Shown here one piece after another: positions 43,887 through 49,383 of a DNA stretch of 64,000 nucleotides (positions are counted from its first letter, which is position 1; the number at the start of each line of letters is the position of its first letter). The stretch spans positions 248,001 to 312,000 of IMG/VR virus record IMGVR_UViG_3300034072_000758; one strand, 5' to 3'. Made by a program: the position numbers and the translations under genes. The notes under the pieces were generated by a model that made no database searches, was not told where the DNA came from, and saw only the letters and a list, made by a program, of their open reading frames with translations.

Positions 43887-44615
43887 ATGTCAGATACCGA
43901 GGTTAGCCCATCGCATTGGATGCTTGAGCCAGATGCTCGCATTTTCAAGCACATAGGCTATGATCTCAATCCTTCCAAAATGCGAATGATGATGGAGTTT
44001 GCCGAGAACTTCAACCAATCAAAATTCAATGATGGTAAGCATGTATCTGGGCGCGATCTGATCTTTAATTTTTTCAGCATACCCGATAAAAGCGTTCGTG
44101 CCGAGATTGGTGATGAATTGCTCAACTTTATCATTGGGCCGTGTGCCGAACGCTATAAGGTCAACAATGACCTGAAACTGTTCACCGATCTTGTCAAATT
44201 TCCTCTTCTATACACACTCGTGGAAGTCTTGTCTCTTGGGCTTCTTCCAACAAGTGCTCGTAAAGACTTCTATCCAAAATTCCTCGATCTGGGAGATACG
44301 TTCTCCCCGGAGATTCCCAATATCGAAATGGGGCCGTTGGGGCTTGTCGTCAATCCCGATCCGCTATGGGAAGCGCGAACACAGGTCTTCGGGCTTCTCG
44401 CCGAGGTATGCGCACCGATCTTTGATGAAGCTGGGTCCGGGGAGATTGCTGAGATCGCCCGCAAGATCATCGCTGATAACCCGGCGCAAGCGGACAAGGC
44501 CAGAGAGGATCAAAAGCTGGTGGGATGGTTCATGGGCCAAGTCATGAAACAGCTTAAGACCAAGACCGATCCTAACGCTGTTCGAGCGGTCGTAATCGAA
44601 GAGTTGTCCAAATGA
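43887..44615 (+). CDS. Protein with C-terminal GatB/YqeY tRNA-binding domain
   Basis: IIADNP......KLVGWFMGQVMK......DP..V. Confidence 0.75.
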   Translation: MSDTEVSPSHWMLEPDARIFKHIGYDLNPSKMRMMMEFAENFNQSKFNDGKHVSGRDLIFNFFSIPDKSVRAEIGDELLNFIIGPCAERYKVNNDLKLFTDLVKFPLLYTLVEVLSLGLLPTSARKDFYPKFLDLGDTFSPEIPNIEMGPLGLVVNPDPLWEARTQVFGLLAEVCAPIFDEAGSGEIAEIARKIIADNPAQADKAREDQKLVGWFMGQVMKQLKTKTDPNAVRAVVIEELSK

Positions 44616-44986: not shown

Positions 44987-45032
44987 CCCTTGCTTAATTC
45001 CAAAACGCTTGATTTAACAGAGGGTCTTGTGG

Positions 45033-45065
45033 TATAAATACTGTACGGCCCTTAAGGCCGTTTTT
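45033..45065 (+). promoter_or_regulatory. Late promoter TATAAATA followed by a short hairpin and T tract, upstream of the RF1-like gene
   Basis: TATAAATA 45033-45040; ACGGCC-CTTAA-GGCCGT-TTTT. Confidence 0.55.
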
Positions 45066-45078
45066 ATGGAGTATCACG

Positions 45079-45762
45079 ATGAAGTATAATATCGAGATTC
45101 GCTCCGCCGAAGGTGGGAGCGATAGTCAGCTTTTCGTAGCTGATCTGGCCAATGCTTATGCCAAACTCTTCAACTCGAAGGGTTGAAAGCACCGTGTCGT
45201 AAAAGAGAGACCGAGCGACACAGGTTTCTTCGAAATCACCATAGAGGTCAATGGTGAAAATCTCAAACAATTAAAGAATGAAGCTGGTGGACACCGTATC
45301 CAACGTGTTCCACCAACGGAAAAACGTGGCCGGGTACATACCAGTACCGTAACGGTCGCGGTGATCGATGCTGACCAGACGCAGGATACTGCCGACGAAC
45401 AGTTCGAATACCGTTGGTTCTCAGGCACCGGGGCTGGTGGTCAACACCGTAACAAGCACCAGAACTGCCTAGAGCTTACACACGTCGCCACAGGCATCAA
45501 ACAGAGCGCCCACGGGCGTTGTCGAGAAAGCAACAAGCGTGAGGCTCTGGACGCCATCAGGGCGAAGCTACAGAGCCATTATGCGGGTCAGTTTGGTGTC
45601 AAGAAGAATACGGATCGTTCCAGTCAGATCGGATCGGGAATGCGCGGGGACAAGCGCCGCACATATCGTTTCCAAGATGATTCGGTGGTCGATCATGAAA
45701 CCAATAAAGCCACGTCCTGCCGGTCTCTAATGAAGGGGAAGTTTGACGAGCTTTGGTCCTAA
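45079..45762 (+). CDS. RF1-like peptide chain release factor lacking domain 1, with in-frame TGA at codon 36
   Basis: GGAG RBS; MKYNIEIRSAEGGSDSQLF...YAKLFNSKG*KHR...EAGGHRIQRVPPTEKRGRVHTSTVTVAV...GAGGQHRNK...KRRTY; TGA at 45184-45186. Confidence 0.85.
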
Positions 45763-46076
45763 GCGACACCCGGAGCGGGGTTCTTATCCCGCTCCATATT
45801 CGTTCGGATGCGCCCACGTAGAATGTTTTTGGCGTGAGTGAAATATATGGTTTCGTTCTCAGTAAAGAAGTCGAAAGAGACAATCTCTTTTATGAGAGAA
45901 TGGTACGCCCATTTCCGCACCAAATCGTCTTCGATCTTAGATATACCGACGATCATGTTACTGTAGTGGTTCACGAAGCTGGCGATTTTTCGCACCCGTA
46001 CATCATCGGGCGCTTTTACCAGCATGTCGGCCAGATTGATCGCGGCTTGAGAATTTCCGAAAGTCGTGGGGTTCAT
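45759..46076 (-). CDS. Hypothetical protein
   Basis: Operonic ORF. Confidence 0.55.
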   Translation of the reverse strand: MNPTTFGNSQAAINLADMLVKAPDDVRVRKIASFVNHYSNMIVGISKIEDDLVRKWAYHSLIKEIVSFDFFTENETIYFTHAKNILRGRIRTNMERDKNPAPGVA

Positions 46077-47303: not shown

Positions 47304-47837
47304 ATGATCGATTTAGAAAAGATACAGGAATCCCAACACCTTTTGGATGTTCTTCTACAGATGGAAGACGTTCTCGACTCGTTGGATTTGTACGTTTTTG
47401 AGAACTGGTATAATGGCGAGATCATTGATGGTCCGAACATCAAGAGATACTGGCTCGATTTCACGTTAAAATACGCATGGGACAAGCAACCAGACGATAA
47501 AGCTGCTTATCGTCTTATGAAACATGGTATTCGTGTATCCTTTGATAAGATGAGATATTCTAAGGGTAAGGAAGAACCGGAGATCGTTGAAGATGAAGAC
47601 GATGAAGAAAAGGTATTTCTTGCTGTAAAGATCAGTATACCTCGTATGCTTTGCGTACAAATTGCCGACGAAGAACTTGACTTCTACGATGAAGAAATTG
47701 ATGCGGAGGACGTTTCTGACGCTAAGGACTCTGACATCGAGAGTGAAGACGAATATTATGGAGACCAAGAAGGCGACGATGATATGAACGCCGACGCAGA
47801 AGGAGAGGCCCCAGATGACCAAGAAAAACCTCAGTGA
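47304..47837 (+). CDS. Acidic late protein of unknown function
   Basis: AATAAATA-TGTGT-ATG; LDSLDLYVFENW..GEII.GP...RYW. Confidence 0.75.
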   Translation: MIDLEKIQESQHLLDVLLQMEDVLDSLDLYVFENWYNGEIIDGPNIKRYWLDFTLKYAWDKQPDDKAAYRLMKHGIRVSFDKMRYSKGKEEPEIVEDEDDEEKVFLAVKISIPRMLCVQIADEELDFYDEEIDAEDVSDAKDSDIESEDEYYGDQEGDDDMNADAEGEAPDDQEKPQ

Positions 47838-49383
47838 GGGCCTAAGACGTGGTGATCTGGAAGACCAAGTTCTTCCTATGATCTCCTTCGATGAATATGA
47901 AAGCAACTTCGGCGACACCGCCCTGACTATCGCTTTTTATATTCATGGTAAGGACGCCGCGACCGACTTCAACAAATTTCTCCAAAAGTCTCACGTAAAC
48001 TTCCTCACGACCGATATTTCGCCATCGCAGGATAAGGACGGTTACTACGCTGTATTTGTCGAGTTCAAGATCGATGACAAGCTTATCGCCAACTTCTTTG
48101 ACATCATCGAAGAGGTAAATAACCTCACCCTGATCGAAGAATGGCAAATCCACTTGAATAACCGCGAACTCATGGCTCTCTCAAAAAAAGCCTTGGAGTT
48201 CTATATCCACGCCAAGTACGAGCGCGTGATCATGAAGGAAGATGTTCAAGAAGATACCAGCGTCGAACAAAAGGCCAAGGCATTCATTGTTAAAAATTTA
48301 GAACACCTCAGCAAGTATTATTCCCTACGTGATTTCAAGAGTGAAGACGCCGCGCGCGAGTTCTATTTTAACTCCTTGGAAAAGGACGATAAATCACCTT
48401 GGGTTCAAGCCATGCCAAGTAGTTTCCACGGTACTGAACTGAATAAGGCAATTAGTCTACTTGTGCCAATCTACAAGGCTGGTAAGAATTTCCGTATCGG
48501 CAAAGCTCCAAAGAAAGTTGCTAGAGACCCTTGGGCCGAAATTGATGTCACCACACCAAGCCTCGCGCCATTACAGTCTGTAGGCATTCTGAACCCATTC
48601 GACGGCTATAAAGTGAAGGGTGTGAAGATGCTCTCGATCAACGATATTAATATGACAGAAGACCATAGTTATACTACTGGTGGAGTCAAAAAAGTCGAAT
48701 GGTTGGCCGAGAAGATTAAAGAGAATGGGAAATTTACGGCCATTATCGTGAACCAAGATTATTCTATTTTGGACGGGCATCACCGTTTTAGAGCCATTCG
48801 TGATTATCTGCGTTACAAGACCATTCCCGCGCTGGTAATCGAAATCAATGACGGAACCAACGAAAGCTATCTGATCGAAGGCTCTGGGGAAGAAGTGACT
48901 TTTGAAAATGTTCACATTGATTTTCATCACGATCAACATGATTATGAATTACGTGCCATCATTCTGGGTAAAGTTGTTGGCTATATACGCTATGTCGTTT
49001 ATCAGGACGAAGTTCACCTCAGCATGATCAAGGTCCACGAGGATTACCGTCGCAAGGGAATAGCTACACAACTGGTGAAGCATCTACAAAAGATGTTCCC
49101 CAATACTGAAATACAAAAGGGTTCAATGACCGATGATGGTTCAAAGCTGTTTGGTGTCTTGCCAACTCATACTGTCGTTGATCCTAATTATGCGCCCAAG
49201 TTCAAGCGCCACGAAGAAGTCAAGAATATGTTAAAGAAATATTCCGATGACTTTGAGGCAATGTCGGATAAGTCAACCTTTATGGATACTCACTCGGATT
49301 GGAATGATCTCCACGACGAAAACGACAAGTTAGATCAAGAGCTTTACGGTAAAAAACCAACAAAAACAATATTTAAGGTGTAA
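47815..49383 (+). CDS. Multidomain late protein: N-terminal domain, ParB-like and GNAT
   Basis: MTKKNLSE; ILDGHHRFRA (ParB); IKVHEDYRRKGIATQL (GNAT). Confidence 0.75.
   Translation: MTKKNLSEGLRRGDLEDQVLPMISFDEYESNFGDTALTIAFYIHGKDAATDFNKFLQKSHVNFLTTDISPSQDKDGYYAVFVEFKIDDKLIANFFDIIEEVNNLTLIEEWQIHLNNRELMALSKKALEFYIHAKYERVIMKEDVQEDTSVEQKAKAFIVKNLEHLSKYYSLRDFKSEDAAREFYFNSLEKDDKSPWVQAMPSSFHGTELNKAISLLVPIYKAGKNFRIGKAPKKVARDPWAEIDVTTPSLAPLQSVGILNPFDGYKVKGVKMLSINDINMTEDHSYTTGGVKKVEWLAEKIKENGKFTAIIVNQDYSILDGHHRFRAIRDYLRYKTIPALVIEINDGTNESYLIEGSGEEVTFENVHIDFHHDQHDYELRAIILGKVVGYIRYVVYQDEVHLSMIKVHEDYRRKGIATQLVKHLQKMFPNTEIQKGSMTDDGSKLFGVLPTHTVVDPNYAPKFKRHEEVKNMLKKYSDDFEAMSDKSTFMDTHSDWNDLHDENDKLDQELYGKKPTKTIFKV

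Follow-up and report, generated by a model that had tools for sequence, protein, structure and literature searches.

How can a release factor gene be expressed if its reading frame is interrupted by a stop codon that only another release factor recognizes? This question is raised by a gene in a 64,000-nt stretch of a huge phage genome (positions 248001–312000 of the 516,805-bp IMG/VR contig IMGVR_UViG_3300034072_000758), hereafter called the window. The initial annotation of the window noted that the listed open reading frame begins at 45361, but that the frame extends upstream to an ATG with a GGAG ribosome-binding site and is broken only by one TGA in an otherwise intact-looking release factor 1 (RF1) core. 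We inspected the sequence and its translations and found this observation to be correct in all coordinates. A search of GenBank phages found no near-identical DNA. The locus contains the following elements:

45009–45038, plus strand: promoter-like TTGATT, 18 nt, TATAAA, with TG before the second hexamer; weak and inferred from sequence only, as a stricter promoter scan reported only an overlapping 9-of-12 match at 45014–45042.
45045–45061, plus strand: G+C-rich hairpin followed by TTTTA that runs into the ribosome-binding site, a terminator-like site that is either the terminator of the upstream gene or a 5′ stem-loop of this transcript.
45068–45071, plus strand: GGAG ribosome-binding site, 7 nt before the ATG.
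45079–45183, plus strand: ORF1, 35 sense codons from the ATG (MKYNIEIRSAEGG...NSKG; in full MKYNIEIRSAEGGSDSQLFVADLANAYAKLFNSKG), encoding the first strand and helix alpha-5 of RF1 domain 2; the start position is conserved in relatives.
45184–45186, plus strand: in-frame TGA (codon 36) in the context GGT TGA A(AG), the inferred recoding site, at the position of the conserved RF1 Trp.
45187–45762, plus strand: ORF2, 191 in-frame codons plus TAA (45760–45762), encoding the rest of domain 2, domain 3 (GGQ) and domain 4.
45310–45318, plus strand: PPT tripeptide (RF1-type PxT) within HRIQRVPPTEKRGRVHTS, nearly invariant in the family.
45436–45444, plus strand: GGQ catalytic motif, invariant in our alignment A2.
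45772–45795, plus strand: hairpin of 10 pairs (7 G-C), 10 nt after the stop codon, terminator-like with a weak T tail.

We first asked whether both pieces belong to one gene. The Pfam PCRF profile matches the two pieces collinearly, with profile positions 104–134 before the stop and 137–194 after it, followed by the RF-1 domain (E 1e-15), which shows one collinear release factor gene broken by a single codon. NCBIfam profiles rank RF1 (148 bits for NF001859, cutoff 400; 143 bits for TIGR00019, cutoff 423) above RF2 (78 bits) and PrfH (44.9 bits for TIGR03072, cutoff 166.65), all below the curated cutoffs. The protein starts 5 residues before EIR.AEGG, where domain 2 of RF1 begins, and the match to RF1 begins at residue 87–112 of solved RF1 chains; the N-terminal domain 1 (about 105 residues) is therefore absent. 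A 124-residue ORF upstream was considered as a detached domain 1 but has no PCRF match. The RF1 reading head (HRIQRVPPTEKRGRVHTS, with PxT as PPT and the Gln, Val and Thr that read the third base) and GGQ are kept and are conserved in the family. The first and third residues of PxT are reported to restrict reading to UAA and UAG; for the present factor this codon specificity is predicted from sequence alone. A model of a full-length relative (protein P0023, not the window protein itself) has a pLDDT of 88.5 and superposes on ribosome-bound RF1 domains 2–4 with TM 0.92–0.93 and an rmsd of about 2 Å, whereas PrfH is a far weaker structural match.

The initial annotation suggested that a factor lacking domain 1 could act in ribosome rescue. 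A stop-codon-independent rescue role is not supported, as the stop-codon reading elements of RF1 are all kept. PrfH (RF-H), the RtcB-linked release factor homologue, resembles the window protein in lacking domain 1, in keeping GGQ and in length. However, it is only a distant match by sequence (PDB 9mor, E 3e-9, against 4e-39 for RF1 and 5e-18 for RF2), the family keeps the PxT reading head, and no RtcB was found among ten neighbouring ORFs. Rescue factors of the ArfB/ICT1 type, which carry a GGQ domain with a basic C-terminal tail and no codon-recognition domain, were ruled out since the PCRF codon-recognition domain is present on both sides of the stop.

Next, we investigated whether the TGA is conserved. 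The initial annotation had named a single TGG-to-TGA nonsense mutation or a sequencing error as the alternative, to be favoured if relatives all had TGG at this codon; the outcome was the opposite. A scan of IMG/VR returned 75 loci (family loci are designated L and proteins P, each with a number) at 42–56% protein identity. Reading the frame upstream of each match showed an in-frame stop at the same place in nearly all of them, always TGA, about 35 codons after a conserved Met-Lys start and never TAA, TAG or TGG. An independent scan of JGI metagenome contigs gave the same picture. Among 115 distinct family members from IMG/VR, JGI metagenomes and other assemblies, spanning 35–62% G+C, 111 have TGA at the homologous codon and none has TAA or TAG there. 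Over all loci, the distinct sequences comprise these 111, four with one TGA displaced 2–10 codons downstream (L018, L071, L211 and L222), one with two stops, TGA and TAG (L231), five that need a +1 frameshift and two that are uninterrupted (L076 and L224). L081 has two TGAs, and L226, a sequence cut at the contig end, also shows W followed by TGA. On a tree of the 115 distinct members (40 substitutions per site in total) the TGA changed to TGG four times, whereas third positions of conserved four-fold-degenerate codons changed 46 times on average (range 16–55); the conservation of the TGA is far beyond chance. In three of these four lineages (L018, L071 and L211) a new TGA lies 2–4 codons downstream. 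Pairwise dN/dS is 0.068 for the 35 codons before the stop and 0.132 after it, demonstrating purifying selection on both sides, and we conclude that both pieces are constrained and infer that both are translated. A pseudogene, a recent nonsense mutation and a sequencing error, although a single transition would give this sequence, are excluded by this conservation.

The same data bear on the possibility that two separate products are made without readthrough, namely the 35-residue peptide and a protein started downstream, for example at GTG 45361, acting alone or assembling. ORF lists start the gene there and gene callers usually report the piece after the stop. However, there is no in-frame start codon between the TGA and 45361, the stretch between them is under purifying selection and holds the PPT motif, and helix alpha-5 in ORF1 is an integral part of domain 2 in the model of the relative. 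We consider this reading very unlikely.

Which residue belongs at codon 36? The initial annotation stated that RF1 homologs commonly have Trp here, and this is right: in 69 cellular RF1 sequences from many phyla the aligned column is Trp in 64, usually preceded by Gly, and a full-length family member aligns its W36 with the Trp of Thermotoga RF1. A TGG-to-TGA origin, with near-cognate tRNA-Trp restoring the ancestral residue, is the simplest account. Some database proteins of about 225 residues carry W at this position and looked like counter-examples. Of three checked, two (P0019 and P0094, loci L077 and L078) have TGA in the DNA and were translated with code 4, which the gene callers chose on short contigs, and one (P0070, locus L076) has a genuine TGG. 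Most other entries are truncated to the piece after the stop. In either case the TGA is hidden, so that the feature is invisible in protein databases.

In order to examine whether UGA is an ordinary sense codon here (code 4 or 25), we compared coding coverage under different codes. In the window, ORFs of at least 80 codons cover 88.6% (0.886) under the standard code and TGA ends 32 of 92 of them; treating TGA as sense gains no more coverage than treating TAG or TAA as sense. The same holds for the flanks of 46 relatives, where TGA ends 274 of 746 ORFs, and for 40-kb regions of two GenBank huge phages. Several family genes themselves end in TGA. Selenocysteine insertion was likewise not supported: RNAalifold found no conserved pairing (0 pairs) from 30 nt before to 80 nt after the stop in 28 diverse members, and the local hairpins of the window (z −2.2) are not shared. 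Although the position is Trp in RF1 and some gene callers translated it as such, both readings are contradicted by these results and are very improbable.

A suppressor tRNA, which the initial annotation offered as one means of decoding, is not supported as the general means. The gene often lies inside tRNA arrays of up to 36 genes, and often within about 1–3 kb of a phage tmRNA gene (L005, L012, L014, L015, L045, L052, L073 and L081) and near amber suppressor tRNA(CUA) genes (L005, L012, L014, L073 and L081); L005 also has a tRNA(UUA). However, among 554 tRNA genes flanking 141 family loci, even where 32–36 tRNAs lie beside the gene, there is a single weak and doubtful UCA call (L182, minus strand, two acceptor-stem mismatches). 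The window contains no tRNA, tmRNA or Rfam family anywhere in its 64 kb, although in most relatives the gene lies inside tRNA arrays; in this phage the gene has a different neighbourhood. As this search covered only 64 kb of the 517-kb genome, a tRNA(UCA) or TGA-recoded late genes in the other 453 kb are not excluded. A dedicated decoder encoded there, either a tRNA(UCA) or a special tRNA-Trp, could switch on UGA decoding so that the factor appears only after that switch, possibly as part of a partial code change of late genes. TGA-recoded phages with RF1 and suppressor tRNAs exist (bioRxiv 10.1101/2021.08.26.457843), and three of 13 distinct phage tRNA-Trp(CCA) genes near family members (L010:4371–4446, L162:828–902 and L199:470–544) have a mismatch at 27:43, giving a 4-bp anticodon stem, a feature reported to raise UGA readthrough in E. 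coli (PMC13092985). A Hirsh-type A24 was seen by eye in some phage tRNA-Trp, but as a U11:A24 pair is common in tRNAs we did not use it as evidence. Given the scarcity of UCA anticodons and the normal use of TGA as a terminator in the window and in all flanks, we regard this timing mechanism as unlikely.

The sequence context of the stop is a leaky one. The preceding codon is Gly (GGN) in 58 of 61 sequences, and the base after TGA is A in 83, C in 20, G in 8 and T in none of 111, whereas T follows in 25% of 368 genuine TGA terminators of neighbouring genes in the same loci. A U at +4 is reported to reduce readthrough (PMC5289835). However, because the sequences are related and the next codon is constrained, this is supportive but not decisive.

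We found that sister groups recode the same region in other ways. In L082 (5950–6580), L150 (5860–6540), L229 and L233 the first ORF ends in CTT TGA and the gene continues in the +1 frame; L232 has CTT TAG. L229, L232 and L233 also carry GGAGG or GGGAG 3 nt upstream of CTT, which is the prfB frameshift cassette, rebuilt in domain 2 of a factor that lacks domain 1. L082 lies between an ADP-ribosylglycohydrolase gene and a DUF4132 gene in a Bradymonadia MAG and may be cellular. AT-rich huge phages of 635–642 kb (L240–L244; GenBank LR745206, LR756504 and LR756502) carry one or two TGAs at codons 44–54 of the same gene instead of codon 36, while the 40 kb around it is standard code with hardly any other in-frame TGA. 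In the tree, cellular RF1 forms one clade and the frameshift forms branch near it. The large group with TGA at the Trp codon contains the displaced-stop lineages L018, L071 and L211 and the uninterrupted L076 as nested, derived lineages, whereas L222 groups with the frameshift forms and L224 with cellular RF1. The shared property across the clade is an early UGA-dependent recoding step. In a search of 185,579 species genomes the short form turned up only on a few MAG contigs (L080–L082 and L150) and every other hit was ordinary prfA; the family is essentially phage-borne.

Taken together, the most likely reading, to which we assign a probability of about 0.55, is programmed UGA readthrough. 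In this view translation starts at ATG 45079 and meets UGA at codon 36, where most ribosomes would terminate through host RF2 and release a 35-residue peptide. A fraction would decode UGA, most likely with near-cognate tRNA-Trp(CCA), which would restore the ancestral Trp and give the 226-residue factor. RF2 is the only factor that reads UGA. The amount of factor would then be set by the competition between RF2 and tRNA-Trp at this codon, and would rise when RF2 activity per ribosome falls or tRNA-Trp rises. The factor is predicted to terminate at UAA and UAG, which together end 60 of 92 window ORFs, about two thirds, and would thereby top up termination capacity in the infected cell. Our analysis establishes the anatomy of the gene, the family-wide conservation of the UGA, selection on both sides of it and the standard code elsewhere, whereas the readthrough product itself, the insertion of Trp, responsiveness to RF2 as the selected property and the role in infection are inferred.

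The interpretation given in the initial annotation is thus partly supported: the gene is an RF1-type factor without domain 1, the TGA replaces the conserved Trp codon, full-length product needs UGA to be decoded and the feature is selected, whereas the proposal that the gate senses host termination capacity remains an inference. Dependence on RF2 follows from how UGA is decoded, and three facts suggest that this dependence is the selected property: the stop is kept, it is re-created when lost, and elsewhere in the clade it is replaced by the RF2-sensing prfB cassette. However, since the factor is predicted not to read UGA there would be no direct self-feedback as in prfB, and why RF2 shortage should call for more RF1-type activity is an argument and not a result. 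Furthermore, L076 and L224 do without any stop. The main rival, less likely but not excluded, is a constitutive attenuator: the leaky UGA would only keep a potentially harmful factor at a few percent of the translation rate, with its response to RF2 an unselected by-product. UGA is the leakiest bacterial stop, with about 6% readthrough in B. subtilis (quoted in PMC7918605), and its exclusive use fits such a device equally well; unregulated overexpression is toxic for RF2 and mildly so for RF1 (PMC12421855), and the stop can move by a few codons without loss. On the other hand, a weak ribosome-binding site or promoter would achieve the same at no cost, and the sister group evolved the complete prfB-type cassette, which in prfB is an efficient sensor and not merely a brake.

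Recoding-based control of release factors is a textbook case known only for RF2, plus one giant-virus eRF1. In prfB, an early in-frame UGA likewise makes full-length synthesis fall as RF2 activity rises. However, in the window the downstream frame is the same frame (GGT TGA A), so that readthrough and not a +1 shift is needed; the site lies in domain 2 at codon 36 and not in domain 1 at codon 26, and control would be exerted by another factor. The giant-virus gene needs readthrough and frameshifting (cited in PMC5009743) and is also a virus-encoded class-I factor that depends on stop-codon recoding, but it is a eukaryote-type eRF1 in amoeba viruses whereas the present gene is a bacterial-type RF1 without domain 1 in phages. 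In phage Qbeta the UGA of the coat gene is read at a few percent by normal tRNA-Trp, with no conserved RNA structure needed, to give the A1 protein. There a complete protein is extended by a C-terminal domain, while here the stop lies early, only readthrough would give any functional product and Trp is the residue the fold requires. TGA-recoded Jade phages encode an RF1 proposed to support termination at UAA and UAG (bioRxiv 10.1101/2021.08.26.457843); those genes are written in the standard code without an internal stop and sit in phages whose late genes are TGA-recoded, whereas here the genome region uses the standard code and the RF1-like gene alone carries the TGA.

Our literature searches found no description of this family or of its stop. 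A 2016 review states that no RF2 gene has an early in-frame UGA with the same frame continuing and that the RF1 counterpart is unknown (PMC5009743), a 2025 survey of 12,753 genomes found no programmed recoding in prfA (PMC12421855), and a review of release factor evolution does not mention phages. The arrangement is the rule in this large, phage-specific RF1 family, which offers a natural system to measure how UGA decoding reports RF2 activity and suggests that large phages manage translation termination as well as tRNA supply and ribosome rescue. A further, more speculative possibility, which we hold slightly less likely than not, is that large phages carry a private RF1 whose synthesis is wired to host RF2 activity, forming a cross-factor feedback that keeps termination capacity up as the infected cell runs down. 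Evolution would then have reached this wiring in at least three ways at the same spot in the gene: UGA in place of the Trp codon, a UGA displaced a few codons downstream and a de novo prfB-like +1 frameshift cassette. This would be the first recoding-controlled RF1-type gene and the first natural example of the in-frame-UGA scheme once proposed for release factor genes.

Within the window, the gene is bracketed by the two G+C-rich hairpins listed above; the upstream one, with its T-run, overlaps the ribosome-binding site, which may couple transcript structure to initiation. Two genes upstream, at 43887–44615 on the plus strand, lies a gene for a 242-residue protein with a C-terminal GatB/YqeY domain, another translation-related domain. 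Downstream, at 47815–49383 on the plus strand, a 522-residue protein combines a ParB N-terminal domain with a GNAT acetyltransferase domain.
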